Shown here: piece by piece, positions 41,070 through 64,000 of the stretch
How the letters are laid out: every line of letters starts with the position of its first letter
Numbering within the stretch: position 1 is the first letter of the stretch
Translations under genes and position numbers: made by a program
The notes under the pieces: model-generated
What the model was told of the DNA's origin: nothing
What the model saw: the letters and a program-made list of their open reading frames with translations, nothing else
The model's database searches: none
Virus record (IMG/VR): IMGVR_UViG_3300035182_002586
Coordinates: 248,001 to 312,000 of that record
DNA length: 64,000 nt
Direction: 5' to 3' (one strand)

Positions 41070-41076
41070 CGGTGTA
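41070..41076 (+). promoter_or_regulatory. CGGTGTA candidate promoter for pyrB
   Basis: CCGGTGTACCGGCGCGCCCCGATG; no SD. Confidence 0.45.
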
Positions 41077-41089
41077 CCGGCGCGCCCCG

Positions 41090-42043
41090 ATGACGGACAT
41101 CAAACACGCAGTCTCCATCGACCAGTTCGACAACCCCTCGATCGAGAGGTTGTTCCTACGAGCCAGGACTCTTCGGGACGCCGACGTGCAGGCGAGCAGC
41201 CTCGCGGGCAAGGTCCTCGCCTGCCTCTTCTACGAGCCCTCGACCCGCACCTCGTCCAGCTTCATCGCTGCGATGACTCGGGCCGGGGGCTCGGTCATTC
41301 CGATCACTCAAGGGGTGCAGTTCTCCAGCGTCTCGAAGGGCGAGACGCTGGAAGACACGATCGTCACCCTCGGTCAGTACGCCGATGCGATCGTTCTTCG
41401 TCACCCGGAGGTGGGCGCAGCCGCACGGGCGGCCGCTGTCTCCCCGGTCCCGGTCATCAACGCCGGAGACGGTGCCGGAGAACACCCGACGCAGGCGCTC
41501 CTGGACCTCTTCACAATCCAAGAGGAGTGTGGCGGCCGCCTCGACGAGCTGAACGTGACGTTCGTGGGCGACCTTGCGCACGGCCGTACGGTGCACTCGC
41601 TGGCGAAGCTCCTCGCACGGCACAACACGAAGATCAACCTCGTCTCCCCCTTCCTTCTCCGCCTCAACCGGATCGGGGATGACGACCCTACCTACCGGGC
41701 CGTCAAGCATCGGATCGGACGGGAGCGCACCGTCAAGAACGGGCTCCACGAGGCGCAGGACATCCTGAACGATTCGGATGTCATCTACATGACGAGGGTG
41801 CAGAGGGAGCGCTTCACGTACGCGGAAGGGTACGCGGAGGTGAAGGACTCCTGCCTGCTCACGGACGAGATCGTCGCGGGGCTGAAACCTCGTGCGCGCA
41901 TCCTCCACCCGTTCCCGCGCGTGAACGAGATCCCGACCACCATCGACAAGGACCCTCGCGCGGCCTACTTCCGGCAGATTCGCAACGGGCTGTGGGTCCG
42001 GATGGCCCTTCTCGAAAGCGTCATCCTCGGGAGGACGCCGTGA
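41090..42043 (+). CDS. pyrB: Aspartate carbamoyltransferase catalytic subunit
   Basis: FYEPSTRT carbamoyl-phosphate site, SSVSKGETLEDT, NAGDG..EHPTQALLD, VGDL.HGRTVHSL, YMTRVQRER and LHPFPRVNEI. Confidence 0.95.
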   Translation: MTDIKHAVSIDQFDNPSIERLFLRARTLRDADVQASSLAGKVLACLFYEPSTRTSSSFIAAMTRAGGSVIPITQGVQFSSVSKGETLEDTIVTLGQYADAIVLRHPEVGAAARAAAVSPVPVINAGDGAGEHPTQALLDLFTIQEECGGRLDELNVTFVGDLAHGRTVHSLAKLLARHNTKINLVSPFLLRLNRIGDDDPTYRAVKHRIGRERTVKNGLHEAQDILNDSDVIYMTRVQRERFTYAEGYAEVKDSCLLTDEIVAGLKPRARILHPFPRVNEIPTTIDKDPRAAYFRQIRNGLWVRMALLESVILGRTP

Positions 42044-46802: not shown

Positions 46803-47018
46803 TTCGACCTCCTACGGGTTTGACCCCCACCGATCAACCTGTCCAACCTCAAGTTGGACGGTCTTGTGTGTTGCATGTGCTGCCCTCTTACGAGGATGGG
46901 GAGGGGCCTAGATAATGGACGTAACGCGGACACGCAAGGGTGGATCGACCTTAATCGTCGATCCTGGGGTCCCGTACGTCACTTTTTCTTGCCTATTGAA
47001 CGACTACTGGCATCCCCT

Positions 47019-47087
47019 GAGGGTCATTGAAACCCAATAGAGGGTCATTGAAACCCAATAGAGGGTCATTGAAACCCAATAGAGGGT
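47019..47087. repeat. 3 x 21-bp tandem repeat GAGGGTCATTGAAACCCAATA (iteron-like)
   Basis: Identical units at 47019, 47040 and 47061, plus GAGGGT; located in the ~500-bp divergent intergenic region. Confidence 0.95.
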
Positions 47088-47282
47088 AGCCTGGGGGGTC
47101 CTCTTAGAGAGGATCCTCACCTTGCCCTGTGGGCATTTCGACACAACCTGCGACGAGACCCCTCGCAAGAAGCACACGTACGCGACGAGGGGGGACGAGA
47201 GCCCCACGGGAAGTCGTCGGAGTACGGGCAGACAAGGGGTGCATGCGGAGCGGTGGTCCCTGTACACCAGGTCGCCCCTAGC

Positions 47283-47289
47283 TGGTGTA
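47283..47289 (+). promoter_or_regulatory. TGGTGTA candidate promoter (TA at -12 of GTG 47300)
   Basis: TGGTG-TATTCT-CGCACC-GTG; a mirror TGGTGTA lies on the minus strand at 47263-47269. Confidence 0.5.
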
Positions 47290-47299
47290 TTCTCGCACC

Positions 47300-47803
47300 G
47301 TGAGCAACTCGTACTCGATCGCGAAGTTCCACGAGAACTGTTTCGGCACGCCTCCCACGCCCGAACACTGCCAGCTCTACGACGCGTACCCTGCTTCGCG
47401 CGGCTACTCGGATCGGAAGTTGAACCGAGAGCGGTTCCGCGCAGCCTTTGTGTTGGCGCTCTACCAGACCATCGTGTTCGGCCAGAAGAAGACGGCGAAG
47501 TCGTACCTCATCATCCCCCGTGCACACGACGCGTGGGTCACGAAAGAGATGCGGTCCCTCATCCAGGAGATCTTCGACCAGATCAAGGTAGTCCGAGCCT
47601 CGGGGAAGGACGTACGAGGGATCACCGACTACATCACGGGGTGCATCAAGTCCCTGCTCATCGGCCACTTGGCCTTCCAACTGAGCGGAGAACCCGAGCA
47701 CTGGTCGGTCTTCGGTATCTCCTCGAAGGACCCCGTGCCCGAATGGATTCCAGATCGGTTGCTGCATGTGGAGAAGCCGGGCCGTAGCGGTTCCGACGAG
47801 TAG
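47300..47803 (+). CDS. Hypothetical protein
   Basis: Start chosen from motif spacing; phage-like codon usage. Confidence 0.6.
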   Translation: MSNSYSIAKFHENCFGTPPTPEHCQLYDAYPASRGYSDRKLNRERFRAAFVLALYQTIVFGQKKTAKSYLIIPRAHDAWVTKEMRSLIQEIFDQIKVVRASGKDVRGITDYITGCIKSLLIGHLAFQLSGEPEHWSVFGISSKDPVPEWIPDRLLHVEKPGRSGSDE

Positions 47804-47813
47804 AGCAGGAGGC

Positions 47814-47820
47814 CGGTGTA
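47814..47820 (+). promoter_or_regulatory. CGGTGTA candidate promoter (TA at -12 of GTG 47831)
   Basis: CGGTG-TACTAA-CACCAG-GTG. Confidence 0.5.
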
Positions 47821-47830
47821 CTAACACCAG

Positions 47831-48634
47831 GTGGATCCCGACGACATCGAGAGCTGGTGGGCCTTGGTCCATCCTCCCGAGCCCCCCACGCCAGGGGAGG
47901 TCCTCCAGGCTGCGCTCCCCTCCGGGTACAACATCAGACCTCCCATCCTCTTGACGGCCGTGGGGTCCGCGAAGGACTTCCGAGATGCCGTTGGGCATGT
48001 GAGCGCTCGCCACAAGCTCGTGCTTGAAGGGCCCGTTGACGAGTACCTGCGCAACCTCTTGCGGCTCTTGGTATCGGAGCAGGGGCCGAAACCGAGACCT
48101 CACCCCGTGTCCCTCGTCCTCCGGGCCATGCGCCGTTTGGCCCGAGAGAAGGACATCCTCTACAACTGGGTGCGACGCAGCTCTCAGCTCCCGGTGAACT
48201 TCAAAGCCCTCCTGGATTCTGTCGTGCATGTCGACCCGGACGAGGAGACCCGTCTCCACGACATCGCCAGGAAGTGGTTCGAGGGTCAAGAGCTGACTGC
48301 CGAAGAAACCTACGATCTCTTCAACAGTGACCGGTGGGCACCACAGCTACCCGCCGTAGCAGCCACCGAGCGGGTAGACCGAGCATGGGGTCTGCTGCTT
48401 CTGGCGTACGCGTCCATTCCACACCTACCCATGCTACTCATCGTCTGTAGTCTGCACGAGGTCCGACACGCTCCGGCCACCCTCCTCTTCGGATGGGACG
48501 GCCAGGATCCACAGAGAGTGAGTTCCGAACTCCTCGGTATCCTCCGGGAGACGGAACTTGTTCTAAGACCTGAACATAGAGATGCAGAAAAGCGAATCCA
48601 CCCTGAGGGTCGTTCCTCCAGTAGCCTCCGTTGA
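47831..48634 (+). CDS. Hypothetical protein
   Basis: 267-aa helical ORF. Confidence 0.6.
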   Translation: MDPDDIESWWALVHPPEPPTPGEVLQAALPSGYNIRPPILLTAVGSAKDFRDAVGHVSARHKLVLEGPVDEYLRNLLRLLVSEQGPKPRPHPVSLVLRAMRRLAREKDILYNWVRRSSQLPVNFKALLDSVVHVDPDEETRLHDIARKWFEGQELTAEETYDLFNSDRWAPQLPAVAATERVDRAWGLLLLAYASIPHLPMLLIVCSLHEVRHAPATLLFGWDGQDPQRVSSELLGILRETELVLRPEHRDAEKRIHPEGRSSSSLR

Positions 48635-49541
48635 GGTCGAGCCGGAACGAGCGGCGCGCGCCAAGCCCCTGCGGCACGCAGACATGCGTGCACGCACGGC
48701 GCAGAGTGGGACGCGTGAAGTCGCTGTGGCACCGCTCTTCCGATGGACCATGAACTTCCACCGACCCGACCGACCCACCGTCGCGGTCCTTTCCGGGCCC
48801 ACCATGGTCCGAGCTGCGATGATCGCCAGCTACCTTTCGCCCCGGTTCGAAACACTTCGTACGGGAGCGATCGAAGAGCTAGCGGAAGGCCGCACGTGGT
48901 TGGAGGGCAACGTCACGAGAGCCTTCCTGGAGAAGATCTCCAAAGCTCGCATCCCTGCGGAATGTCGAGACGGCGACGAGTCCCCTGAGGAAACGTGGAA
49001 CCTCCTGTGGGGCCTACTTCGGACCGAGACGCTGATCGTGGAGGAGACCCTTCGCGACCTCCTCGATCAGGCTACCCCTCTCATCACGAGTGTTCATCGG
49101 GCGCTGTGGGAAGCCCGTTTCCTGCTCAGAGAGCATGCCGACGACCGCATTGCGCGGGCGTTCGTCTGTGCTTTCTCTCGGTGGATCTCCGGCCACCCCC
49201 TCTCCGTCGAGGATGTCGCTGCCCTTCGGAGCGCTGACATCGAGCCCTTCCCGTTGTACGCCGTGGATCAAGTCGAAGCCGCCTGCTTCCTCCTCACCCT
49301 CGCAGCGCAGAACGCGCTCTTGAGTCGGTTCGTAGTCTTGTTCGACGGACTGGAGGACGCTGACTACGCGACCGTCTGCGGGCTGGGGGAGCTTCTCTCC
49401 GTGCTCGACAAGTGGGTGGCAAGGGATGGTTCCCCCCTTGGCGTCCTGGTTGGCTTCGAGGGTACGACCTACCAGCGCCGGGCTCTGCGTCAAAAACACC
49501 CGGTGCTTGCGAAACGGGTCGAGCAAAGCCCGACGGCGTAG
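48582..49541 (+). CDS. Degenerate P-loop ATPase-like protein resembling DUF2791/BrxD (start uncertain)
   Basis: VAVLSGPTMVRAAMI (Walker A-like position, lacking GKT), FSRWISG and RFVVLFDGLE (Walker B-like). Confidence 0.45.
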   Translation: MQKSESTLRVVPPVASVEVEPERAARAKPLRHADMRARTAQSGTREVAVAPLFRWTMNFHRPDRPTVAVLSGPTMVRAAMIASYLSPRFETLRTGAIEELAEGRTWLEGNVTRAFLEKISKARIPAECRDGDESPEETWNLLWGLLRTETLIVEETLRDLLDQATPLITSVHRALWEARFLLREHADDRIARAFVCAFSRWISGHPLSVEDVAALRSADIEPFPLYAVDQVEAACFLLTLAAQNALLSRFVVLFDGLEDADYATVCGLGELLSVLDKWVARDGSPLGVLVGFEGTTYQRRALRQKHPVLAKRVEQSPTA

Positions 49542-49553
49542 GCCACTTATCGG
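49539..49553 (+). promoter_or_regulatory. Candidate TA-N7-TATC promoter (TAGGCCACTTATCGG)
   Basis: 14 nt upstream of ATG 49568. Confidence 0.45.
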
Positions 49554-49567
49554 AAGCACCTTGTGCC

Positions 49568-50089
49568 ATGCCCGAGATCTTCCGCACACGGGACGTGATC
49601 GTCTTCGCCAAGACCCATGCGATCCCGGTGGCCGTCTCCACAACGTTGAAGACCGGCGGTTGGACCGGCGGCCAGGGTGTGCAGTGGGCAGACGTTCCCG
49701 GCGTCGACCAGTTCCTCGTCACCTACTCGGACGGCCCCTACGGCGGGTTCCTTCTGTGGGGGTCGGACGAACCCGCCGACCAGTACGTGTCGTACGTCGA
49801 GAACCAGCCAACCTACGGCTTCGCCGTCCTCTGCACGGGGAACTGGCTCATCGCAACGTCCACCTTCGAGCGCTACACGTACGCGTCACGCACTGGAGGG
49901 GGCCCCCTCGTCCCTCTCGTGTACGCCCCTGGTGATGCTCTCCGGTTCAGCCTTCGGGGCTTCTTCACGAAGGAAGACGAGTGGACTCTCTCGGCGGACC
50001 CACGGGCACCGAACCGCTACATCGTGGGGCGCGTCGCGCAACCCAACACGCTCAACCCGACGTTCCTCTCGGTTCAGACGATCTTGTAG
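49568..50089 (+). CDS. Probable virion structural (head decoration-like) protein
   Basis: Beta/Gly-rich 173 aa; preceded by the putative late motif. Confidence 0.5.
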   Translation: MPEIFRTRDVIVFAKTHAIPVAVSTTLKTGGWTGGQGVQWADVPGVDQFLVTYSDGPYGGFLLWGSDEPADQYVSYVENQPTYGFAVLCTGNWLIATSTFERYTYASRTGGGPLVPLVYAPGDALRFSLRGFFTKEDEWTLSADPRAPNRYIVGRVAQPNTLNPTFLSVQTIL

Positions 50090-50570
50090 CCTGAACGGCG
50101 GCCAGGGCCATCCCCCGCGCGTACTCGATGACCGTGTGCGCGATCGCCTCCAGGTTCCGTGTGGCGAGGTCGGCCTGGAAGCGATCGACTTCCGTAGCGT
50201 CCTCGGCACCGGCCCTCATGCGAGCCCGCTCGCACTGGAGATCCGCTCGCCCGAGACGGAGCATGAGCGTTTCCAAGATCTGACGGTGGATGGACGACAC
50301 CTCCTCGTCTTCGGAACGAGGGCGGTTACGCGCCACGGCGGTCCAGAAGTCCCGCGCCGCTTCGTCGGGCTGGTAGCCTCCCTCGAAGCCCACCTCCCCC
50401 GCAGGAGAGATTCGAACGAGGTACTTGCCCTGACGCGCGATCACGACTTCACCGGGCGCAACCGGCGAGCCGTCACCAAGGAGAACGGGGGGTGCCTCCT
50501 CGGGGAACAGCTCCGGGTGCTGCGACCGCCAGAAGACTTCCAGCTCGGATTTGTCGTCCTCGGAGGGCAT
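50052..50570 (-). CDS. Hypothetical protein
   Basis: AGGAG SD; CGGTGTA at 50595-50601. Confidence 0.6.
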   Translation of the reverse strand: MPSEDDKSELEVFWRSQHPELFPEEAPPVLLGDGSPVAPGEVVIARQGKYLVRISPAGEVGFEGGYQPDEAARDFWTAVARNRPRSEDEEVSSIHRQILETLMLRLGRADLQCERARMRAGAEDATEVDRFQADLATRNLEAIAHTVIEYARGMALAAVQATRSSEPRGTSG

Positions 50571-50602
50571 GGGTCGACTCCTGTACGACCCTTCTACACC
50601 GC

Positions 50603-50902
50603 CTAGTCCGTCTCGTCATCATCCGAGTCAGGTGCGTCGTCGTCGGACGGCTCGGTGGGTACGGGGGTTCCAGCACGAGAGAAGATTGCTGCCTTCACCC
50701 GCCGGGACATCGTGAGCATCTTCCTGGTGGTCTCGTCGAGCACGAAGTCCAAGGGGCCCGCAGCCGACTCGAACAGGATCACGTCGCCCACGCGAACGAC
50801 GCATACCCACCAGTCATCTCGGTCGGGAATTCCGCGCACGATCACTTCCCCACCGGGAGAAATGGCTCGTGTTGCTTCACACAGGCGTCGTAGCTTACGC
50901 AT
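50603..50902 (-). CDS. Hypothetical protein with acidic tail
   Basis: GAGG SD; 99 aa. Confidence 0.55.
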   Translation of the reverse strand: MRKLRRLCEATRAISPGGEVIVRGIPDRDDWWVCVVRVGDVILFESAAGPLDFVLDETTRKMLTMSRRVKAAIFSRAGTPVPTEPSDDDAPDSDDDETD

Positions 50903-51119
50903 GGGTCCTCACCCGTGTGAGGAGACAAGAGATTCCTCGACAACTTTGCTGGGGGTCATCTTCGTGTCACGGCAGAGGATAGGTCAGGCCAAGCTCACCG
51001 CCGAAGGGGCGGGGACACCAGCCTTCTGGAGGCCCTGTCCTACCTAGCGAATTTCGCGGGCAAGTACGGCCACGGTTCGCGATAGCGCTGCGGTAACGCT
51101 CTTGTGCGCGGGCGTAGGT

Positions 51120-52052
51120 ATGCCCACCCCGTCCGCGCTCGTCTCGCGCGTCGCCCACCGTTACGCGCTCGTCTCGCGCGTCGCCCACCGGTTTGCAGCC
51201 TCCCACGAGGTCTTCGCGAGCAAGGCCCTGGCGCGTTCCTGGCCAGAGTTGGTCAGCATGGTCGAGAAGGATGCGCAGGCCGTGGGGCACTGGCGTAAGA
51301 AGTTCGTCTCGGAGTCCTTGGCCATTCTCAAGAAGGGCCGGGCCGATAGCGAGGCCATGGTCAAGGGGCCGTGGTGGGAGCGCTATCCGGACGCCGTGAA
51401 AGGGAACTTGAAGGACATCGAGTTCGTGTTCTCGACGGTCGAGAAGAACGTCAAGAAGCTCGAAACGAAGATGATCGACGAGCCTCTGGCGGGGCACGAG
51501 GTCAGCCAGATCCACATGGACCACTGGGACCCCGAGATGTTCGCAGACGGTCAGACGAAGGCTGACTACGGCCGCAAGCCCATCGACCCGATCTTCGAGG
51601 CCGTGCAAGCGGTCACCACGAAGTACCACGAGTTCTGGAAGCGCTTCAACGCGAAGTACGACCTCGGGAGCCTGAACGTCACCCTCTATGGCCTTCTCCC
51701 CGCCAGCTTGAACAAGAAGAGCCGCCTGAACTTCGAGCTGATCCAGAAGCTCGACGGGGAGGACCTGGAGAAGGCCCTCCACTGGTACAGCGGCGAGCTG
51801 GAGAAGCTCGCGAAGGAAGTCGAGAAAGAAGGTCCTCCCGGTGCCGCGAACGCGCTGTCCGTCGGTGCCGGCCTCTCGGCCCTCATGGGCGAGGCCAAGA
51901 AGAAGGGCGATCAGTGGACCGCCGACTTCGCCAAGTCCCTGATGGGCCAGGCCGAAAGAAGGCACCCGTTCTCCGACAAGCAGCGGAGCCTGCTCGATGC
52001 GAAGCTGCACGAGTACCACGTGCCACCCGTCAACTACACGATCTGGTGGTGA
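51120..52052 (+). CDS. Hypothetical protein with duplicated ALVSRVAHR[YF] N-terminus
   Basis: AGGT SD before ATG 51120; 30-bp tandem duplication at about 51134-51190. Confidence 0.7.
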   Translation: MPTPSALVSRVAHRYALVSRVAHRFAASHEVFASKALARSWPELVSMVEKDAQAVGHWRKKFVSESLAILKKGRADSEAMVKGPWWERYPDAVKGNLKDIEFVFSTVEKNVKKLETKMIDEPLAGHEVSQIHMDHWDPEMFADGQTKADYGRKPIDPIFEAVQAVTTKYHEFWKRFNAKYDLGSLNVTLYGLLPASLNKKSRLNFELIQKLDGEDLEKALHWYSGELEKLAKEVEKEGPPGAANALSVGAGLSALMGEAKKKGDQWTADFAKSLMGQAERRHPFSDKQRSLLDAKLHEYHVPPVNYTIWW

Positions 52053-52056
52053 CCCG

Positions 52057-52770
52057 ATGGCATTCCTCGGCCTCCGCGTTCCTCTCGAAACCGCCCGCCT
52101 CTTGTCCGAGGTGCCGGACGTCGCCAAGTACGGTGATCCGGAGCCGCTCGATCGGTTCCACGTGACCCTGCTCGTCCTCGGGGACATCCCCATCGAGGAC
52201 GTAGCGCGCACTATCGAACCTGTCTTCAAGGTTGTCTCCGAGACCCGGCCCTTCACGGTCTCGACGTCACACATCACGACGTTCCCGCCCGGTGAGACGA
52301 CCCCGATCATCGGGCTCATCGACTCTCCCGAGATCCACGTCCTCAGGGCCCGCCTCACCGAGGCGCTCGGGGAAGCCGACATCGAGTACAACCGCAAGTT
52401 CAAGGACTACGTACCCCACGTCACGCTTGGGTACTCCGCCCCCGACCTGCACTACGATGGTGGGATCAACGTGCACCTCCCCGTCCCGATCTCGTGGGGC
52501 GCTCACGAGCTGGTGCTGTGGGGTGGGCACGTCGACGATCAGGTCATGACCCGGGTGATCGTGACCTTCCCGTTCTCGCTCGGTCTTCCTCGTCCGGGAG
52601 ACGAACCGGAGCAAGAGAAGGCGGAAGAGCCGGAGAAGGTCAAGGACAGCATCCGCTACAAGGCTGCCGTGCGTCTCGCGATGCACGAGGGGCAGACCGG
52701 GTGGCCCTCACGCTCTAGTACGGCGAGTCGTGTGCTCAAGCGCTACCTCGGAGCCGTTCGAGGAGGCTGA
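52057..52770 (+). CDS. 2H phosphoesterase, Acb1/T4 gp57B-like
   Basis: Two H-x-T-h motifs (FHVTLL and PHVTLGY) in a context PEPLDRFHVT...KFKDYVPHVTLGY resembling Acb1 (PVPREKIHST...DFDDYTPHITLSY, recalled from memory). Confidence 0.75.
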   Translation: MAFLGLRVPLETARLLSEVPDVAKYGDPEPLDRFHVTLLVLGDIPIEDVARTIEPVFKVVSETRPFTVSTSHITTFPPGETTPIIGLIDSPEIHVLRARLTEALGEADIEYNRKFKDYVPHVTLGYSAPDLHYDGGINVHLPVPISWGAHELVLWGGHVDDQVMTRVIVTFPFSLGLPRPGDEPEQEKAEEPEKVKDSIRYKAAVRLAMHEGQTGWPSRSSTASRVLKRYLGAVRGG

Positions 52771-52774
52771 TCCC

Positions 52775-53686
52775 ATGCCGATGCAGATCGAGTGGTGCTC
52801 AAGGTGCAGTGCAGCGATCTACGACGTAGACGACGTGCCCGGAGCCTGCGGTTGCCCTGATGGGCAGCTTCGGGGCCTCCTCGCCATGCGCCGGATCGCA
52901 GCCGGAACCCCCGCCCCTCAACCCGTGGCGTCCCCGCCCCCGGTCGTGACGCCCTCTTGGGACACCATCCAGGTGGCCGTTCAGAAGGCCGTGCGAGCTG
53001 CCGTGCAGGCTCCTGCACGGGCCCCGCTCGTCACTCCGATCGCCACTCCGATCGCCCCCACCTCCGGTTTGCCGGACCTCACCCCCGACATACTGATGTC
53101 CGGCAACGCACTCGCTGAGTACCAAGCGATGCGATCTGGAGTCATCCCGAGCAGCAGCCAGGCACCCGTTCGAGGGCGTCGTGGGGACGAGCCCGTCGAA
53201 GTCTCGTGGGACGACAACGGTGAGGACGCCCCGCCTGTCACGGGGGCGCTCGAAGAGCTGTGGCTCGGGCGCGCCGAGATGGAGCAAATCGCGAGCAGTG
53301 GGGTGGACATCGAGTTCTCGACTCCCGACGAGTACGAAGCTCCCTCTCGCCCTCGCTACAGCGAAGCCGCCCGCTTCCGTGTTGATCGACCCCCGCCCCG
53401 TGCCCCCACTCCTACTGGACCTCGGGTAGGCGGAGTCGTTCGACAAGACGGGGAGGTCGTGGGGAGCCGTCAGGCACTTCGACAGACGGCCGCATCGGCC
53501 CCCCCTTCCCTGCGCGAGATCCGGCAACGGGCTCGTGAAGGCGTCGTCTCACCGCCCCAAGAAGTTCGGGTAGCCGTCCGAACGGCCCCTGTTCGAACCG
53601 CCCCTGCCCGAACGGTCCCCGCGGAGCCCCCGCCCATGTCCGCGTACGAGCGGATCATCAACGGGCAAGGCCCCCTCGACGACTAG
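52775..53686 (+). CDS. Hypothetical protein, N-terminal Zn ribbon, Pro-rich disordered body
   Basis: WCSRC...ACGC; GGAGG SD. Confidence 0.6.
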   Translation: MPMQIEWCSRCSAAIYDVDDVPGACGCPDGQLRGLLAMRRIAAGTPAPQPVASPPPVVTPSWDTIQVAVQKAVRAAVQAPARAPLVTPIATPIAPTSGLPDLTPDILMSGNALAEYQAMRSGVIPSSSQAPVRGRRGDEPVEVSWDDNGEDAPPVTGALEELWLGRAEMEQIASSGVDIEFSTPDEYEAPSRPRYSEAARFRVDRPPPRAPTPTGPRVGGVVRQDGEVVGSRQALRQTAASAPPSLREIRQRAREGVVSPPQEVRVAVRTAPVRTAPARTVPAEPPPMSAYERIINGQGPLDD

Positions 53687-54048
53687 TTCGGCTTCTTCGC
53701 GGGCGGCTTGTCCTGCGGGGGGAGGTCGGAGACCGGGCTGACGCCCTTACGCACGGCGACCTGTCTGATCGCTGGATAGAAGGCCCTGGCGACACGAAGG
53801 GCGGCCTGCTCGTATTCGAGCCTCACGTGAGCGAGTTCGTTCAGCATTTGGTGCGCTCCCTCCGGCACTTCGAGGAGGAAGTCCATCACGTCCTCAGCCA
53901 CGATGTCGGACAGCTCGATCATCAGTTGCTTGCGTTCGACTGGATCGTTCGTCTCCGCGATCGTCATCGCGAGGCGGAGAGCGTCATCTGAGAACACGCC
54001 GTCGTCTTGGGTCGGGGCTCCACAGGTCGGGCAAGATTCGTCGCTCAT
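53683..54048 (-). CDS. Hypothetical protein with N-terminal CPTC
   Basis: 121 aa; convergent 4-bp overlap with the preceding gene. Confidence 0.55.
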   Translation of the reverse strand: MSDESCPTCGAPTQDDGVFSDDALRLAMTIAETNDPVERKQLMIELSDIVAEDVMDFLLEVPEGAHQMLNELAHVRLEYEQAALRVARAFYPAIRQVAVRKGVSPVSDLPPQDKPPAKKPN

Positions 54049-54226
54049 GACCAGAGGATAGCCGCTACCCGGTGTACCGGCACGCCCATGCGACGGGTTG
54101 GGTTACCCGTTCTGGGGAAATCGACATCGACCCCCATCAGCTTCCTTGACAACACCTACGCTGTTGAGGAAACACTACAACCCTCCGTGACCTAATCGGA
54201 ATCGGATCAGAACAAGGAGACGTCTC

Positions 54227-54457
54227 ATGCCCGCTGCGAAGAAGACCACCGCCAAGAAGACCACCGCCAAGAAGACCACCGCCAAGAAGGCCCCCGCGAA
54301 GAAGGCCGCCCGCAAGACCACCGCGAAGAAGGCCCCCGCGCGCAAGACCGCGGCCAAGAAGGCGCCGGCCAAGAAGGCCGCGCGCAAGCCCGCCGCCAAG
54401 AAGGCCGCGCGCAAGCCCGCCGCCAAGAAGACGGTCGTGGCGCCCCCGGCGATCTGA
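54227..54457 (+). CDS. Histone H1-like Lys/Ala-rich DNA-binding protein
   Basis: (A/T)AKK and PAKKAARK repeats across 76 aa; AAGGAG SD; own terminator. Confidence 0.85.
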   Translation: MPAAKKTTAKKTTAKKTTAKKAPAKKAARKTTAKKAPARKTAAKKAPAKKAARKPAAKKAARKPAAKKTVVAPPAI

Positions 54458-54478
54458 TCGTCGCGGTCCGACACGTTG

Positions 54479-54517
54479 AAGGCCCGCCCCTGAAAAAGGA
54501 GCGGGCCTTCGGTTTTT
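54479..54517 (+). terminator. Intrinsic terminator after H1-like gene
   Basis: AAGGCCCGC...GCGGGCCTT stem followed by CGGTTTTT. Confidence 0.75.
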
Positions 54518-54532
54518 CCGGGCCTTGGGAGG

Positions 54533-55591
54533 TCAGAAGTCCTTTCGGTCGACCTCGTGGTACCCGCACACTCCATCATCCAGGACGACGAACCGCTTCC
54601 CGTTGTTCGTGTCCTTCTCGTCGATACGGGTCCAGAACCGGATCTTGCGCCCCGCCCGATGGGGCAGGACGTAGAGGCACTTCTTGATGCCGGGGTTCAC
54701 GGGGTTCTCGTACGAGATGAAGAGGACGTTGCCCTTGTCCCGTACGATCATGCTCTCGGGGATGTCCCGGATCGACCGGTAGGGGACGATCGTGAAGTTG
54801 ATGTTGATGCTCCTGCCCTTGAGCGTCCCCGAGGGGATCGTCCCATGGGCGGACCCGATGGCGACGTAGCGGGCGCCCTGGAACTCGAACGTCTCCAGGA
54901 ACGGGTGGGACATCTTCGGTGCATAGCTCTCGCGCATGATGGTCCAGAGCGGCCCCTCCGACCGCATGAACGGGTGCTCGCTGAACTGCGCGAACTCGTC
55001 GTGTTCCGCCTCGTTGATCAGGTCGTAAAACTCCTCGTCGCTGATGTAGACGTGGGAGTCCGAGGGCCGGGGACCGGGGATGATCTCCGGGGAGGCCGCC
55101 AGCTCGTCCACCAGTTCCTCGTCCGACTTGCCGAGGAACCGGGTCGGAGTGCTGTCCGTGACGGGCAGCCATTGCAGACCGGGGTTCGGCGTGTTCAAGG
55201 AGGGCTTCGAGGGACCTGCGCTATCGATGGGTGCAGGCACCGGAGGAGCAGCCTCCACAGGCGCGGGCGACACTACCGCGTCTTCCCTCGCCCACTCGGG
55301 AAGACCAGTGCCCCCAATGCGGACGATAGCGTCCTGGTAGGTCGTCCTCGCGTACTTCTTGTCCGTCGAGTCCGCGTCCTTGCTCGTGAGCACCGTCCGC
55401 AGGAAGTCGTCGAGAACCCCCTTGAGGGTGCCGGCCTTGATGGCGGCGTCGATGACCTTCTCGCGGAACACCCTGACGACGAACTTCTCCGTGCCGATCT
55501 TCCTCTGCTCGCGGCTACGCCGCGACGTGGCCTCGTGGGCCTCACGCTCTTCCATGGGATCCTCGCTTGCTTGCAGCACTTGCAGAGGCAT
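54533..55591 (-). CDS. Hypothetical protein
   Basis: 352 aa; two domains joined by a Pro-rich linker; start may be 55555. Confidence 0.6.
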   Translation of the reverse strand: MPLQVLQASEDPMEEREAHEATSRRSREQRKIGTEKFVVRVFREKVIDAAIKAGTLKGVLDDFLRTVLTSKDADSTDKKYARTTYQDAIVRIGGTGLPEWAREDAVVSPAPVEAAPPVPAPIDSAGPSKPSLNTPNPGLQWLPVTDSTPTRFLGKSDEELVDELAASPEIIPGPRPSDSHVYISDEEFYDLINEAEHDEFAQFSEHPFMRSEGPLWTIMRESYAPKMSHPFLETFEFQGARYVAIGSAHGTIPSGTLKGRSININFTIVPYRSIRDIPESMIVRDKGNVLFISYENPVNPGIKKCLYVLPHRAGRKIRFWTRIDEKDTNNGKRFVVLDDGVCGYHEVDRKDF

Positions 55592-55668
55592 CCCGTTGCT
55601 TGCGTGGGGTGCCTCGGAGCAACGGACCTTGCCGCCGCTCCGAGGTCAGAGGTACACCGGAAACCCGT

Positions 55669-56262
55669 TCAGAGCTGATCGTCTGTGTCGAGTAGGCGCT
55701 CTTGCCAGGTAGGGGGTGTCAGGTCTCTACCCGCTGGCTCGAAGGTCCGCGTGAAGATGTACCCGTCCATCAGCTCGGGCGTTCGATCCCCCTCAACCCA
55801 CACGAAGCGGACTCGTACGAAAGGGCCCGTAACGACCTCCACGACACGAGCCAGGCGACCGCTGCGCCGCTCCTGCACGAGCATTTCCACGGTAGCCCAC
55901 AAGGGCTCGTGTAGGTCCGGAATGGGACCCGGATGGTGCAGGGCCTCACGGAGCTGGCGATCACGGTCCGCCTCTTGGGTTCGGCGGACGAACTCCCGCA
56001 GCTTGGGTGAGGTGAGAGACCGGTCGTGGGCGTACCGTAGATGTAGGCCGTGTAGCTCTCGCTGTTGCGGCCGTGTAGCCCCTTCGACGAAGACCACCTC
56101 AAAGTCGAAGGCGTCTGGATGGTCTATGACCTCGTGGAAGCTCACGTCTTGCACATGAGGATCACGTCGAAGCTGATCGAAGTGCCGGCGCATGAGTGTG
56201 TGATCCTCGGCCGAGAGAACCACGTACCGGAGCTGCCATCGGGCGGGGGTGGGGGTAGGCAC
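55669..56262 (-). CDS. Hypothetical protein with C-terminal PPTWQERLLDTDDQL
   Basis: GGAGGT SD; C-terminal SH3-like segment. Confidence 0.6.
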   Translation of the reverse strand: MPTPTPARWQLRYVVLSAEDHTLMRRHFDQLRRDPHVQDVSFHEVIDHPDAFDFEVVFVEGATRPQQRELHGLHLRYAHDRSLTSPKLREFVRRTQEADRDRQLREALHHPGPIPDLHEPLWATVEMLVQERRSGRLARVVEVVTGPFVRVRFVWVEGDRTPELMDGYIFTRTFEPAGRDLTPPTWQERLLDTDDQL

Positions 56263-56275
56263 GTCACCTCCGAAG

Positions 56276-56614
56276 CTATTCGTCGAAGCGGGTATCGTCG
56301 AGAACCCTCTCCCACGTGGATAGCGGGACGGGACAAGGACCGAACCCTACAACAAGAAGCACCTGGTGACGCTTCTCCCCGCCCTCCTCGTAGGTGACGT
56401 GGAAGCTCGTGTAGCCCGACCAGTGCTCTACCTGCGAGACAGCGAAGTCCTCTACGTTGAGCGCCGTCTTCACGTAGTGCGTGGCGTCGGCGTAGATCGC
56501 GGGCCCCCCCGGATCCGACAAGTGGTAGATGCGAGGAAGTTTCGAGGAAGGGCGCTCCACCCCGAGCTGCGTGAAGAGGTGCTCGGCTAGCTCCCCTTGG
56601 TCTACCGCTGCCAT
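56276..56614 (-). CDS. Hypothetical protein with C-terminal LSTWERVLDDTRFDE
   Basis: ATG 56614 chosen downstream of the upstream stop. Confidence 0.6.
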   Translation of the reverse strand: MAAVDQGELAEHLFTQLGVERPSSKLPRIYHLSDPGGPAIYADATHYVKTALNVEDFAVSQVEHWSGYTSFHVTYEEGGEKRHQVLLVVGFGPCPVPLSTWERVLDDTRFDE

Positions 56615-56676
56615 CGAGCCCCACGCCTCCGGAAAGGGGGTCAAGACAGCGTAGACCGGTGGGGATCGACGGATTC

Positions 56677-57258
56677 TCACGCCTCTTCCTCCAAGAGACG
56701 CGTCCACGCGTCCAAGGCGGGGGGCGACACTTCTTCTGCAAGCGCCTCCACATCCGTCGTGTCGGGAACCGGGGCGCGATCCCCGAAGAGGTCCGGGACG
56801 CGACGCGTCGGGGAGTAGTCCGGTAGAGGAAGTGCGACCTCGAAGCAAGCGCTGCGCTGTGCGAGCACCACCTGCCACCGGAGGCTCTCCCGTCCGTCGA
56901 GGGCCATGTAGGGTTCCGCTTGCAACGTGACCGTCAGATGCCGTGCGTGCGCACTGAAGACCCCCTCCACGTCGTGGGCCGACTCCAAGGAGAACACGTA
57001 GTCGTTGCCCTCGCCGGGCTGACCCACGGAGTCCGCGTCGAGAACCCAGTACCCACCTCGCTCAATGGTTCTTCGCGCGAAGTCGAACTGGAGTCGAGGC
57101 AACATGAGGGTGCTCGGAAGGTCTCCCATCAGAGAACGCGTGTTCTCCACGAGAACCTGAGCGGGAAGGTCATGCGTTGCCCCGAGCTGGAGAACGAGTG
57201 CCCCGGGGAAGGAATCGGGGTGGACGCGAACAACGAGCGCGGTGAAGTCGATTAGCAT
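56677..57258 (-). CDS. Hypothetical protein with C-terminal PPALDAWTRLLEEEA
   Basis: ATG 57258 overlaps the upstream stop. Confidence 0.6.
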   Translation of the reverse strand: MLIDFTALVVRVHPDSFPGALVLQLGATHDLPAQVLVENTRSLMGDLPSTLMLPRLQFDFARRTIERGGYWVLDADSVGQPGEGNDYVFSLESAHDVEGVFSAHARHLTVTLQAEPYMALDGRESLRWQVVLAQRSACFEVALPLPDYSPTRRVPDLFGDRAPVPDTTDVEALAEEVSPPALDAWTRLLEEEA

Positions 57259-57731
57259 TGAAGTTCGTTCACGATGAGGTGATCCCACAGCGAGATGCGC
57301 TTGCCCCATCCCGGCACAAGGGCCCGAAGCGCTGCGCTTACAGGCCAGAAGAACGAGTCGTAATACTGGTCGGGCCAGTGGAACTGGCCTCGGTCGTCCG
57401 TCACCCACAGCTCTTTGCCCGAGGCGTCGATGCCGATCGGGCTAACGCCAGTCGCGAAGAGCCAGCCGTAGCGCACTTCCTGGATGCGGAGAACCGCAGG
57501 GCGCCGCCGCTCGACGACGCAGTTGTGTGCGTAGTCGACCTCCTCCCCTACGGCCAACCACGAAGGGGCGGTGACACCTCGTTCGATCGGCGGTCGATAG
57601 CGCTGCCACCGGGCTCGAATCTCATCGTCCGTCAGGAAGAGGATCTGCGTGTGGCACCCCTCGATGTGACAAGGGCGCCGCCGTTTCTGGCCCGGCCGAA
57701 CCACAGGCTCCGTACCGATACCGATCGCCAT
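57252..57731 (-). CDS. Hypothetical protein with C-terminal ISLWDHLIVNELQC (start uncertain)
   Basis: ATG 57731 preferred because ATG 57797 would overlap the divergent start at 57796. Confidence 0.5.
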   Translation of the reverse strand: MAIGIGTEPVVRPGQKRRRPCHIEGCHTQILFLTDDEIRARWQRYRPPIERGVTAPSWLAVGEEVDYAHNCVVERRRPAVLRIQEVRYGWLFATGVSPIGIDASGKELWVTDDRGQFHWPDQYYDSFFWPVSAALRALVPGWGKRISLWDHLIVNELQC

Positions 57732-57778
57732 CCGCCGGCCGTGGCGGTCAACCCACCAGGATCCTCGGGGTAGCGTTG

Positions 57779-57785
57779 CGGTGTA
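57779..57785 (+). promoter_or_regulatory. CGGTGTA candidate promoter (TA at -12 of ATG 57796)
   Basis: CGGTG-TACAGC-TTGGGC-ATG; no SD. Confidence 0.5.
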
Positions 57786-57795
57786 CAGCTTGGGC

Positions 57796-58089
57796 ATGAG
57801 CCAGGTCTTGTTCCGGGGTGTGCTCTCCAACAATACACCGGTGGAGGTCATGGCCGGGTGGGACCACCCGCTCCAGCACTTCTACCTGACGATCTTCGAT
57901 CTCAGCGAAGACGCGGAGGAAGAGACCGTCTGGTCGACCATCGCGTACCCGAATACGGCAGACTCCAAGGGGACGGCCAGGCTTCGTGCGAAGCTGGTCG
58001 AAATGGGCCTTCGGGCGCCGCCGACCTTCTGGGAGCTGGTCGAAAAGAAGGAAGGGAACGCGCAGTACCACCTGTCGGTGTCGTCGTAG
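57796..58089 (+). CDS. Hypothetical protein (GWDHPLQHFYL family)
   Basis: Motif seen in small phage/plasmid hypothetical proteins. Confidence 0.55.
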   Translation: MSQVLFRGVLSNNTPVEVMAGWDHPLQHFYLTIFDLSEDAEEETVWSTIAYPNTADSKGTARLRAKLVEMGLRAPPTFWELVEKKEGNAQYHLSVSS

Positions 58090-58134
58090 GCGGGGCCCGG
58101 ATGGATCATCCCCGCGTCACGAGGTAGTAGGGTC

Positions 58135-58665
58135 ATGCGGTTTCAGGGCATCCCCCAATTCACGCGTCACCCGGGCTACGCCGTCGATCAGTCGTGGGAC
58201 GACCTCAACCTGACGATCGAGAAGTACGTGAAGGACTACGGGCTCGACCTGAACCCCGACTTCCAGCGTGGCTACGTCTGGACCCCCGAGCAGCAGACCC
58301 GCTTCATCGAGTACGGTCTCAAGGGCGGGCAGTCGGGCCGCAGCATCTACTTCAACCACCCCAACTGGAACACGGGCATCAAGCGCGAGCCGAAGAAGTT
58401 CGTCATCGTCGACGGCAAACAGCGCCTCGAAGCGGTCCTCGCCTTCCTGCGCAACGAGGTCCCCATCTTCGGCGGGCACTACTACCGCGACTTCGAGGAC
58501 AGCATGAATTGGGTCCGGCACAACTTCCGGTTCCACATCAACGACCTCAAGACGCGCGCCGAGGTCCTCCAGTGGTACCTCGATCTGAACTCGGGCGGCA
58601 CCGTCCACTCGGATGACGAGCTGAACCGCGTGCGTGCCTTGCTGGCTACGGCCAAGGGGTCGTGA
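58135..58665 (+). CDS. Stand-alone DUF262 (GmrS/SspE N-terminal ParB-like) protein
   Basis: LNPDFQRGYVW, IVDGKQRL and YLDLNSGGT are DUF262 signature motifs; no nuclease domain. Confidence 0.85.
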   Translation: MRFQGIPQFTRHPGYAVDQSWDDLNLTIEKYVKDYGLDLNPDFQRGYVWTPEQQTRFIEYGLKGGQSGRSIYFNHPNWNTGIKREPKKFVIVDGKQRLEAVLAFLRNEVPIFGGHYYRDFEDSMNWVRHNFRFHINDLKTRAEVLQWYLDLNSGGTVHSDDELNRVRALLATAKGS

Positions 58666-63103: not shown

Positions 63104-64000
63104 CTAGCGGTGCTCTCCGATCGCGTCCGGTCTGATCGCCCGGTTCCACGGCATGAGCGTCGGGTAGCAGACCCTTGCCAGCTCAGCCATCTCCCAGGCG
63201 ACGCGGCGATACGAGATGTGGCCCTGCGGCTGCGTGCGCAGCTCGGTGATGTAGTACAGCTCACGCATGTCCATCTGGAAGATGGACCGGTGAAGGTAGC
63301 CGAGCGGTACGGCGTACTGGACGATCGAGGAGGACACGCCAGACGAGATCATCGTCCGGCACGCAGTGCCCACTTCGTCCATCGCCGAGCGGTAGGGGGC
63401 CTCGAACTCCGTGCCTTTGAGGTCGTCCGGCACGAGGTAGCCGTAGTCCGTCCCGAGGGGTTCGACGTACTGCTCGCACCGTCTGTGGCGCTGGAGGTCG
63501 CGGAAGGCGCCATAGTCCATCATCACGTCGAACGTGATCGGGACCGTCTTGAAGATCTCCGGGACCGGGTGCTTGCCCCGCGTCTCCATGAGTGCTCCGA
63601 ACGCCCCCCGGTCGAGCCCGTGCCAGTCGGAGACCCTCTGCCAGAAGCGCGTCTCGTGGCGGAACGCGTCGTCTGCGGTCATGGGGTCCTCGATGGTGAC
63701 CCGCCACTCGCTGCTCTTCGTACGGGGGACTCGACCCCTGCCGAGGTCTCGGATCGGGGGCTCGAACGTGTTCGCCTTCGCCCCCATCGCGAAGACCGGA
63801 GCGAACTTCGAGGCTGCCGCCACCATGCGCTCGCCGATGGCCCTCAGCTCGGGGTTCGAGCTACCGAGGAGGTCAGACATGACGTAGCGGGCATCGCGCG
63901 CGTTGAACACGCCTGCGAGGTTCGTCCCCGTGCCTGCGGGCAGCAGATAGCGGAGGTTGTCGAAGGCGCGGGCCTTGACCGAGGGCTTCTTCATCAGCTC
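63104..64000 (-). CDS. thyX: FAD-dependent thymidylate synthase (ThyX/Thy1-type), 5'-truncated by window edge
   Basis: FRDLQRHR ThyX-type motif and RELYYITELRTQPQGHISYR; the reading frame stays open to the window end. Confidence 0.75.
   Translation of the reverse strand, partial: ELMKKPSVKARAFDNLRYLLPAGTGTNLAGVFNARDARYVMSDLLGSSNPELRAIGERMVAAASKFAPVFAMGAKANTFEPPIRDLGRGRVPRTKSSEWRVTIEDPMTADDAFRHETRFWQRVSDWHGLDRGAFGALMETRGKHPVPEIFKTVPITFDVMMDYGAFRDLQRHRRCEQYVEPLGTDYGYLVPDDLKGTEFEAPYRSAMDEVGTACRTMISSGVSSSIVQYAVPLGYLHRSIFQMDMRELYYITELRTQPQGHISYRRVAWEMAELARVCYPTLMPWNRAIRPDAIGEHR

Follow-up and report, generated by a model that had tools for sequence, protein, structure and literature searches.

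Many unrelated small proteins of an uncultivated giant phage and its relatives end in the same kind of short peptide, Trp-x-Arg-Leu-Leu followed by acidic residues, which behaves like an address tag for one shared, as yet unidentified partner. In the window, i.e., the whole 64,000-nucleotide stretch of DNA that was analyzed, this tail is found on the products of four translationally coupled minus-strand genes (55669-57797) and of a fifth gene (52775-53686), in the form P/S/T-[WY]-x(1,2)-[RH]-[LIV]-[LI] followed by an acidic end. The observation made in an earlier sequence-only reading, that these five genes share a C-terminal peptide, is confirmed. The window is part of a 529/620-kb phage contig with 63% GC, the host of which is probably a Chloroflexota bacterium.

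Of the four coupled genes, g55669 (55669-56262, minus strand, 197 aa) encodes a predicted N-terminal alpha/beta domain, a helical linker, a small beta-barrel, a coil and a tail helix (tail DNA 55672-55719, TPPTWQERLLDTDDQL); here, one extra residue is found between Trp and Arg, and the family is present in all 7 related loci. Gene g56276 (56276-56680, minus strand, 134 aa; tail DNA 56279-56326, PLSTWERVLDDTRFDE) starts at the GTG at 56680, as indicated by the N-termini of homologues and by an independent gene call, and this start overlaps the stop of g56677 (GTGA). In g56677 (56677-57258, minus strand, 193 aa; tail DNA 56680-56724, PPALDAWTRLLEEEA) the ATG overlaps the stop of g57252, and a linker of about 40 residues precedes the tail; the gene is absent from two of the related phage fragments, referred to as L003 and L091 (an indel). 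Gene g57252 (57252-57797, minus strand, 181 aa; tail DNA 57255-57302, KRISLWDHLIVNELQC) probably starts at 57797 rather than at 57731, which was used in the sequence-only reading and is the JGI call (159 aa). Its conserved Cys and His residues (C61, C66, H109 and C111, in the numbering of the alignment) suggest a Zn site, which is inferred from sequence alone. The His in WDHLI is derived; both homologues have Arg (WDRLL and WDRIL). The four genes overlap start to stop (ATGCTAA, GTGA) or are 13 nt apart. The fifth gene, g52775 (52775-53686, plus strand, 303 aa; tail DNA 53630-53683, PPMSAYERIINGQGPLDD), encodes an N-terminal Cys-rich segment and a long Pro/Ala/Arg-rich low-complexity region with conserved islands, followed by the tail, and its family is present in 5 of 5 loci that cover this position.

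The tails are more frequent at C-termini than expected by chance. In 105 proteins of this phage (from the window and about 30 kb to the right of it), the pattern of the sequence-only reading was found at 5 of 2100 positions in the last 20 residues and at 1 of 26871 internal positions (Fisher 1e-5). Residue shuffles gave a mean of 0.55 proteins with a looser pattern and reached 5 in 0.1% of trials, while four positives in a row among 105 genes has p = 1.6e-4. Because these p-values are post hoc, the pattern was re-tested on four other loci that were retrieved through homology of the protein bodies, not of the tails. There, the same pattern yielded 4 tail and 0 internal hits (1.2e-4), and a version that also allows Met yielded 17 of 1960 against 11 of 16628 (1.6e-10). 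A control set of 723 ORFs from Chloroflexota genomes showed no C-terminal excess.

The bodies to which the tails are attached appear unrelated. BLASTP revealed no similarity, hhalign probabilities were at most 0.6% apart from C-terminal segments, no similarity was found beyond the C-terminal 10-70 residues, and bodies from which the last 22 residues had been removed fall into 19 groups. The predicted secondary-structure order of g56276 and g55669 also differs. The earlier statement that there is no other detectable similarity is, however, slightly too strong, because profile comparison hints that g55669, g56276, a protein of the related locus L092 and perhaps g57252 share the last strand or the beta-barrel that precedes the tail (probabilities at most 21%). 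Synonymous codons differ between the tails of one genome, i.e., the constraint acts on the protein.

A full HMMER search identified 21 remote homologues of g55669, at about 25-30% identity, of which 20 keep a recognizable tail (11 match the strict pattern), including two, P0011 and P0022, that have lost the C-terminal domain and retain only the N-domain and the tail. In the g55669 family, the tail is an ancestral feature, not a recent convergent addition. In five other related phage fragments the same syntenic module carries 2-7 tailed proteins each, and about 14 unrelated tailed families are counted in all. The motif core is 60-90% identical, compared to 50-60% overall, while in three of four families the last six residues are only 17-50% identical; the extreme C-terminus is the least conserved part of the tail. 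In L091, the g57252 homologue reads about 30 residues past the motif. Relatives were not found by blastn and tblastn against isolated phages, scans of IMG/VR with single proteins and with alignments returned only the contig of the window itself, and of two metagenome scans one found nothing and the other found a further related locus, L097. One alignment (A5) was too divergent for pattern scanning.

The tails also show genome-specific dialects. Seven tails in the related locus L095 and six of seven in L097 have Leu-Met or Val-Met, while none of the tails of the window, L003, L091, L092 or L098 does; counted by family, Leu-Met is found in 7 of 8 families of one clade against 0 of 9 in the other (hand-calculated Fisher 4e-4). 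In L091, the unrelated g55669 and g52775 homologues both end in AYQRL[IL]RGGG[LI]. This evidence rests on two clades and few genomes, and L095 and L097 are sister genomes.

Structural information is limited to AF2 models of low confidence, which were built from 2-sequence alignments. For g55669 (pLDDT 62) a helix at residues 185-190 follows a coil at 177-184, and for g56276 (pLDDT 55) a linker at 113-119 is followed by a helix at 120-128, with a tail pLDDT below 50. Across 48 tails, Pro is found within 8 residues upstream in 34 and a Ser/Thr cap in 40. Searches of Pfam, PHROGs and NCBIfam with all carriers and with the untagged neighbor g54533 gave nothing, except for DUF3268 and a Topo-type Zn ribbon in one L095 carrier. 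Searches of PDB sequences with single sequences and with four family profiles (A1, A2, A5 and A6) gave nothing below E 0.1, and a Foldseek comparison of the g55669 model to the PDB and BFVD gave no match at E <= 0.001, only generic ferredoxin-like hits.

From the above data, the tail is best described as a portable C-terminal short linear motif composed of a Pro-rich, Ser/Thr-capped linker, a one-to-two-turn helix, [WY]-x(1,2)-[RH]-[LIV]-[LIM], with the aromatic residue 7-14 residues from the end (mode 9-10), and an acidic end that in many relatives finishes in Phe, Tyr or Leu. It displays the general sequence features of such motifs, i.e., it is short (under 12 residues), resides in a flexible context, is conserved as an island and is present on unrelated proteins of a conserved accessory-gene module in an uncultivated clade of high-GC huge phages, probably infecting Chloroflexota. 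The most likely function, with a probability of about 0.6, is that of a docking peptide, where the Trp and the two aliphatic residues would insert into a hydrophobic groove of one common receptor, the Arg and the acidic end would add electrostatic contacts, and different cargo or effector proteins would thereby be brought to the same place. The existence of the motif, its enrichment at C-termini, its constraint at the protein level, its conservation over deep divergence, its occurrence on unrelated bodies and its variation by genome were established by the analysis, while the helix-on-tether geometry, binding to a single receptor and the mode of that binding are inferred. The variable spacing of 1 or 2 residues between the aromatic residue and Arg is awkward for a single rigid helical binding mode. 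Outside the module the motif is rare; among 45 further genes to the right along the 620-kb contig only two relaxed matches were found, in segments L008 (5668-6027) and L009 (3078-3308), neither individually significant against a tail HMM (E 0.9 and 9), and the next 10 kb had none.

The interpretation offered in the sequence-only reading, a common receptor in a sorting, degron or docking system, is partly supported. Tests for the three outcomes that it had named as refuting, i.e., a lack of enrichment at C-termini, a lack of conservation among homologues and full-length paralogy of the genes, all came out in favor of the idea, and the dialects shared by unrelated proteins with differing codons add evidence for a common receptor that was not available to that reading. 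The data do not discriminate between sorting, packaging, recruitment and degradation, although a classical C-degron is unlikely because the last residues are variable. A phage-encoded partner is considered the most likely receptor, followed by a virion or compartment component and then by a host hub. The leading candidate, as receptor or co-factor, by synteny only and thus tentative, is the g54533 family; g54533 (54533-55591, minus strand, 352 aa) has no tail and lies immediately downstream of the g55669-family gene in 6 of 6 loci.

An alternative, considered unlikely, is common descent without a shared partner, i.e., that the carriers are very old tandem paralogues or share a mobile domain composed of a small barrel, linker and helix, where the tail is simply the last and best-conserved structural element and packs against that domain. 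The adjacency of the genes is what would be expected for tandem duplicates, a shared F-[EG]-P ... P-x-[ST]-x-W pre-tail is seen in several families, and hhalign aligned the barrel and tail of the g55669 family to L092:1430-1846 (73 columns, E 0.0011, probability 21%), the last strand and tail to g56276 (E 0.011) and the start of the barrel to g57252 (E 0.095). A shared C-terminal barrel in some carriers therefore remains possible, and part of the sharing could be common descent of a domain-plus-tail unit. However, the tail also occurs without any barrel, in P0011 and P0022, after the low-complexity region of the g52775 family, and on proteins of 74-76 aa and one of 487 aa; g56677 aligns over only 10 residues, the low-confidence models place the tail after a coil and not packed, and dialects across families are not expected from descent alone. 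A degron, i.e., a tail that hands the proteins to a host or phage AAA+ protease or to its adaptor so that a set of early proteins is removed on schedule, a special case of docking in which the receptor is a protease adaptor, is also unlikely. The C-terminal, flexible and exposed position and the small size of the accessory proteins encoded in one operon are compatible with this role, and the top, nonsignificant fold match of g55669 is a Lon specificity factor (5ycq, E 0.029), which is weak support. Yet known bacterial C-degrons of the ssrA (LAA) and MuA type are read from the free C-terminus, while the last residues of the 48 tails are D, F, L, Y, E, G, T, A, C and others, differ between orthologues and belong to the least conserved segment, and no protease or adaptor gene was seen in the loci examined.

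Two further explanations are very unlikely. A nascent peptide acting in the ribosome exit tunnel at termination, as in TnaC or SecM, to tune translation of the overlapping downstream gene, would fit the translational coupling of the four genes and an aromatic residue 8-12 residues from the stop, roughly the distance of Trp12 of TnaC from its stop. However, across the tails this distance ranges from 7 to 18 residues and differs even between orthologues, including those of g57252, the carriers are followed by gaps of -7, -4, +13 and +77 nt and include proteins of 300-490 aa, and the gene downstream of g52775 is convergent, so its tail cannot serve translational coupling. A translated DNA or RNA signal (promoter, RBS, terminator or repeat), or simple chance combined with selective reading, is largely refuted. 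The acidic EEE of g56677 is encoded by GAGGAAGAGG directly before the next start, which looks like a Shine-Dalgarno sequence, but codons for the same residues differ between tails (CGC, AGG or CGT for Arg; CTA, CTC or TTG for Leu), and no promoter- or terminator-like sites were found. In addition, the enrichment was replicated in independent loci and is absent from the control, and the tail is conserved at the amino-acid level down to about 25% identity. A membrane-targeting helix of the MinD/FtsA type was rejected because the tails are acidic, not basic, and a resemblance to the FtsZ C-terminal peptide was rejected because the residue order differs (P-x-F-L-R against W-x-R-L-L).

Literature searches found nothing on such a motif, and no such tag system has been described, but several known systems follow a related logic. 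The C-terminal tip of SSB (an acidic run and DDDIPF) and the acidic, Phe-ended tails of T7 gp2.5 and gp4 are also docking handles with acidic residues and a hydrophobic anchor on a flexible linker, and many relatives of the tails end in DDD[FY], EDDF, DEDLF or DDNF. In SSB, however, one protein's tail contacts many partners, while here many proteins carry one tail, the conserved core is an internal helix 7-14 residues from the end rather than the terminal IPF, and the window tails end in QL, DE, EA, QC and DD, i.e., none ends in [IL]PF. A canonical SSB-type DDDIPF tip is found on a different, 81-aa protein of the same phage (L008:6318-6563), i.e., docking tips of this kind are present in the genome. 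Sliding-clamp-binding peptides (bacterial QL[SD]LF, and the C-terminal tails of T4 gp43, gp33 and gp55 that bind gp45) also dock unrelated proteins of one genome onto one hub, but none of the tails inspected contains Q-L-x-L-[FL], their invariant features being instead an aromatic residue, a basic residue and L-[LM], no clamp gene was seen in the DNA examined and the carriers are not recognizable replication or transcription proteins. Encapsulin cargo-loading and microcompartment encapsulation peptides are C-terminal tags behind a Pro/Ala/Gly-rich linker that sit on diverse cargo and bind the inside of a shell, in encapsulins of an HK97-type fold related to phage capsids, and tag and receptor co-vary by lineage. 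The encapsulin family 1 consensus (LTVGSL[KR], in the tested form [LIV]-[TS]-[VIL]-G-S-L-[KR]) is absent from all tails, microcompartment helices are longer (about 18 residues), and no encapsulin or other shell family appeared among the Pfam hits of the neighboring genes, a search that did not cover the whole 620-kb genome. The acidic helical Phi-x-x-Phi-Phi motifs of eukaryotes and their viruses (p53/MDM2 FxxxWxxL, LxxLL boxes, acidic activation domains) share the chemistry, i.e., an aromatic and two aliphatic residues on one helical face within acidic, disordered sequence that folds upon binding into a groove, but this resemblance is one of physical type only, without an evolutionary or functional link, and the hosts here are bacteria. 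Capsid-targeting signals of T4 internal proteins and P1 Dar proteins are common short signals that load several accessory or anti-defense proteins of one phage into the head for co-injection, but they are N-terminal and in T4 are cleaved, while here the tag is C-terminal and there is no evidence of virion association.

A more far-reaching reading, which is possible but speculative, is that the tail is the address label of a phage-encoded protein-targeting system, where a single phage receptor (the g54533 family, a capsid-interior or portal component, or a component of a phage-built compartment) would collect a changeable set of accessory or anti-defense proteins, for loading into the head and co-injection or for concentration at a phage factory. 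Tag and receptor would then co-evolve into lineage-specific dialects, in a phage counterpart of encapsulin cargo tags or of C-terminal organelle-targeting signals. Peptide tags that bring many proteins to one hub are central to bacterial and phage biology, but few are known in phages, and this one marks a set of otherwise unannotatable ORFan proteins in huge phages as one functional group and gives each of them a handle. If the receptor is a virion or compartment component, the tag would explain how these phages sort accessory proteins and could be reused to target cargo; if it is a host hub, the tag identifies a takeover target in Chloroflexota, whose phage biology is almost unexplored. The dialects also offer a natural co-evolution data set for finding the receptor by computation. 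The bare motif alone, at about 20 bits, cannot reach significance among 10^9 proteins, and for a DNA-pattern scan no single 14-base pattern covers even the five window tails.

The conserved module also contains untagged members. These include a 2H phosphoesterase of the LigT/2'-5' RNA ligase superfamily with a weak Acb1 match (52057-52770, plus strand) and a 76-aa basic Lys/Ala-repeat protein (54227-54457, plus strand), which is kept in the same position in L003, L091 and L095. The module includes defense-related domains, i.e., in addition to the 2H phosphoesterase a GmrSD_N/DUF262 domain. The divergent neighbor at 57781-58089 (plus strand, 102 aa) has a degenerate tail-like segment, PPTFWELVEKKEG, about 20 residues from the end; it is conserved in L003 but is a doubtful member of the tailed set. 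A possible member is a 172-aa protein (47285-47803, plus strand) with a variant tail, PVPEWIPDRLLH (W-x3-R-L-L), and this variant is conserved in the L091 homologue (PIPDWMRSRLLDP).

The analyzed window is identical to positions 248001-312000 of IMGVR_UViG_3300035182_002586 (528,957 bp, 63% GC), a record that is itself a trimmed copy of JGI contig Ga0373636_0000001 (620,031 bp), from which the first 90,621 bp and about 450 bp at the end have been removed; the removed part may be host DNA, a repeat or phage sequence. The left 35 kb of the window carries large minus-strand genes with strong codon bias, which are inferred to be structural (tail-type) genes from size and codon bias alone. The right half carries accessory and nucleotide-metabolism genes, which encode HU, a transglycosylase, ribosomal protein bL12 (40663-41049, plus strand, with both Pfam domains, i.e., the dimerisation domain and the C-terminal domain), an aspartate/ornithine carbamoyltransferase (41072-42043, plus strand), a dNMP kinase, a patatin, a GH25 protein, a 2H phosphoesterase, a GmrSD_N/DUF262 protein and ThyX. 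The last of these is cut by the right edge of the window (63104-63994) and was identified from the JGI gene calls with PF02511 and from the full ORF in L004. No isolated phage is related at the DNA level. The 80 best relatives of the carbamoyltransferase in GTDB genomes are found exclusively in Chloroflexota (Anaerolineae, Ardenticatenales, Caldilineales and Promineifilaceae), at 54-57% identity. A Chloroflexota host is therefore the best guess but remains an inference, and this is the only clue to the host.

The sequence-only reading described five genes, here named by their left-hand coordinates (g55669, g56276, g56677, g57252 and g52775), that end in a common type of C-terminal peptide, and this observation held: all five ORFs and their tails are present as described. 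Comparison with homologues refined two of the start sites, such that g56276 begins at the GTG at 56680, overlapping the TGA of g56677, while g57252 probably begins at 57797. The first four genes form a coupled minus-strand unit with an ATGCTAA overlap, a GTGA overlap and then a 13-nt gap, followed by a 77-nt gap and the untailed gene g54533. The third-position GC of these genes is lower than that of the structural genes (0.69-0.79 compared to 0.85-0.90), but the second-position GC is low, as in real genes, and all four have conserved homologues, i.e., they are genuine genes. More generally, genes in the stretch 47000-58000 have lower third-position GC and higher first-position GC than the structural genes, and a codon-usage gene caller trained on the long genes missed several of them. 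At the 5' end of the unit, g57252 and the divergent gene g57781 overlap by 17 nt (57781-57797), as do their counterparts in the related contig L003 (1385-1401, see below), which leaves no intergenic space for promoters in either phage, and no sigma-70-like sites occur in 52000-58500.

To determine whether the shared tails could be explained by chance, 105 proteins of this phage were examined, 60 from the window and 45 from about 30 kb to its right. Only about 105 kb of the 620-kb genome was covered in this work. The pattern of the sequence-only reading is found in five tails and at one internal site (2100 and 26871 positions, respectively; Fisher 1e-5), residue shuffling reaches five in 0.1% of trials, and the observation of four positives in a row has p = 1.6e-4. 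Because the pattern was formulated after inspection of the data, the count was repeated on four loci from other phages, which had been retrieved through homology of the protein bodies. In these loci the same pattern gives 4 tail and 0 internal hits, and a version of the pattern in which Met is allowed gives 17 of 1960 tail positions compared to 11 of 16628 internal positions (p = 1.6e-10). In 723 ORFs from Chloroflexota genomes the tail rate equals the internal rate. The gene sets used for the window and for locus L097 were called in this study. Two further small proteins of the same phage, encoded 20-30 kb from the cluster at L008:5668-6027 and L009:3078-3308 (loci to the right of the window on the same contig), end in ...RPTLWDRLRTDDNF and ...CRAWQRKLLAEDPLDVEL, respectively. 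They rank first and third among the non-training matches to an HMM of the tail, but neither is individually significant (E 0.9 and 9).

The conservation acts at the level of the protein rather than the DNA. The same residues are encoded by different codons in different tails, with Arg encoded by CGC, AGG or CGT and Leu by CTA, CTC or TTG, and in the related phage contig L091 the codons CGA-TTG-ATA of one tail correspond to CGC-CTT-CTG of another. A search of the region revealed no promoter- or terminator-like site, and g52775 is followed by a convergent gene, so its tail cannot serve translational coupling.

BLASTP comparison of the carriers with each other gave no hits, and profile comparison of the small family alignments identified only the tails. 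With a deep alignment of the g55669 family (A5), g56276 aligns over the last strand, linker and tail (27 columns, E 0.011), a protein of locus L092 aligns over barrel plus tail (73 columns, E 0.0011, probability 21%), g57252 aligns weakly at the start of the barrel (E 0.095) and g56677 aligns over 10 residues only. The AF2 models are of low confidence, but nevertheless predict different layouts: g56276 is modeled as two helices, three strands, a coil at 113-119 and a helix at 120-128, while g55669 is modeled as an alpha/beta domain, a long helix, a small barrel at 121-176, a coil and a helix at 185-190. In both models the tail has a pLDDT around 50 or less. Consequently, the carriers are not full-length paralogues, although a shared "barrel plus tail" unit in some of them cannot be excluded.

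A word-index search identified one 60%-identical homologue of g55669 on a 5.3-kb Logan contig (L003), which also carries homologues of g57252, g56276, g54533, the Lys/Ala-rich protein and g52775, each with its tail. In these pairs the motif core is 60-90% identical compared to 50-60% overall, while the last six residues are only 17-50% identical in three of four families. A third relative shows WDRIL in the g57252 family, which indicates that the His found at this motif in the window is derived. The decisive result was obtained from an exhaustive HMMER search with the g55669 profile A1, which returned 21 remote homologues of 90-244 aa at roughly 22-37% identity, many of which match only the N-terminal domain. 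Twenty of the 21 end in a recognizable tail; 11 of these meet the strict pattern, while the rest have Phe or His in place of the aromatic residue, or Lys in place of Arg. Two of the homologues (P0011 and P0022) consist of the N-domain followed directly by the tail.

All related loci that could be read, i.e., L091 (a 137-kb contig), L092, L095 (a 95-kb contig), L097 and L098, display the same syntenic module. It is composed, in order, of a GmrSD_N-like gene, one or more tailed genes, the tailed g55669-family gene, the g54533-family gene, which is never tailed, a gene for a small basic Lys/Ala-rich protein, the tailed g52775-family gene and a 2H phosphoesterase. The number and identity of the tailed genes in the array vary between relatives. 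For example, L095 has seven tailed proteins in 20 kb and L097 has seven, while g56677 (56677-57258) has no counterpart in L003 or L091, where the g57252-type gene is followed directly by the next gene. In L091 the g57252 homologue (L091:9511-10053) harbors the motif (QPWARLRF) but then reads on for about 30 residues and overlaps the next gene by 53 nt, which could reflect a lost stop, an assembly indel or a real extension. With the last 22 residues removed, the tailed proteins fall into 19 BLASTP groups, of which about 14 carry a clear tail, and only one carrier has a known domain (DUF3268 plus a Topo-type zinc ribbon). The g54533 family is found directly downstream in 6 of 6 loci and has no match in Pfam, PHROGs, NCBIfam or PDB. 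The very basic Lys/Ala-repeat (histone H1-like) mini-protein keeps its place inside the module in four phages (window 54227-54457, plus strand; L003:4165-4353; L091:11715-11840; L095:12048-12146), and in the window it is shadowed by a long antisense ORF. The 2H phosphoesterase of the module (window 52057-52770; LigT-like, with a weak Acb1 match) is split into two genes in L095 and is a single 484-aa protein in L097 (L097:16918-18372).

A summary of 48 tails gives the consensus P-x-[TS]-(A)-[WY]-x(1,2)-R-L-[LM]-x-[DE]-D-D-[F/Y/L...], and within this frame the tails of one genome resemble each other across unrelated proteins. In L095 and L097 the second aliphatic residue is Met in 7 of 8 families, the exception being L097:18697-18975, which has Val-Val, while in the window, L003, L091, L092 and L098 it is never Met (0 of 9 families; Fisher value, calculated by hand, 8/19448 = 4e-4). 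Few genomes contribute to this comparison, and two of them are sisters. The two families that are present in both clades (g55669 and g52775) both switch. Furthermore, in L091 the g55669 and g52775 homologues both end in AYQRL[IL]RGGG[LI], and in L097 two unrelated neighbors both have WSRLM[DE]DD. Because the codons differ, this similarity is not the result of recent gene conversion, and the simplest explanation is one receptor per genome with a groove that sets the dialect.

Collectively, it is concluded that the tail is a portable docking peptide, in which the Trp and the Leu-Leu/Met pair would form the hydrophobic face of a short helix, Arg and the acidic end would provide charge contacts and the Pro-rich linker would provide reach. 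The presence of the motif on unrelated bodies, its enrichment at C-termini, its conservation in remote homologues and its genome-specific variation were found directly in the sequences, while the helical geometry, the existence of a single receptor and the binding mode are inferred, with structure models of low confidence. The interpretation offered by the sequence-only reading, i.e., a sorting, degron or docking system with a common receptor, is therefore partly supported: the data favor docking to a common receptor, without discriminating between the purposes that docking may serve or identifying the partner.

Among the alternatives, a degron that is read from the free carboxyl end is unlikely because the extreme end varies, a peptide that arrests translation in the ribosomal tunnel is unlikely because the spacing to the stop varies from 7 to 18 residues, and a membrane anchor is unlikely because the tail is acidic. 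A phage-encoded receptor is favored because the module is conserved as a block and because the dialect tracks the phage lineage, but a host hub that differs between hosts would give the same picture. The g54533 protein is the top candidate on synteny alone. Recruitment into the virion or into a phage-built structure is the most interesting possibility still compatible with the data.

The logic of the tail is that of clamp-binding peptides, SSB tips, the T7 gp2.5/gp4 tails and encapsulin or microcompartment cargo tags, but its sequence matches none of these. Apart from the DUF3268 carrier, neither the motif nor the carrier families were found in Pfam, PHROGs, NCBIfam, PDB, isolated phages or the literature searched. 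The same contig also encodes an 81-aa protein without a Pfam or NCBIfam family, located about 21 kb to the right of the window (L008:6318-6563, minus strand of the locus), which ends in ...LPAPPPVDEDDDIPF, a canonical SSB C-terminal tip. The protein is too short to be an ordinary SSB and may be an SSB-tip mimic or decoy. Also to the right of the window, a LAGLIDADG homing endonuclease gene (L009:939-1886) is located among the small hypothetical genes to the right of the replication block (DnaB, PolA, AAA and SNF2 helicase).
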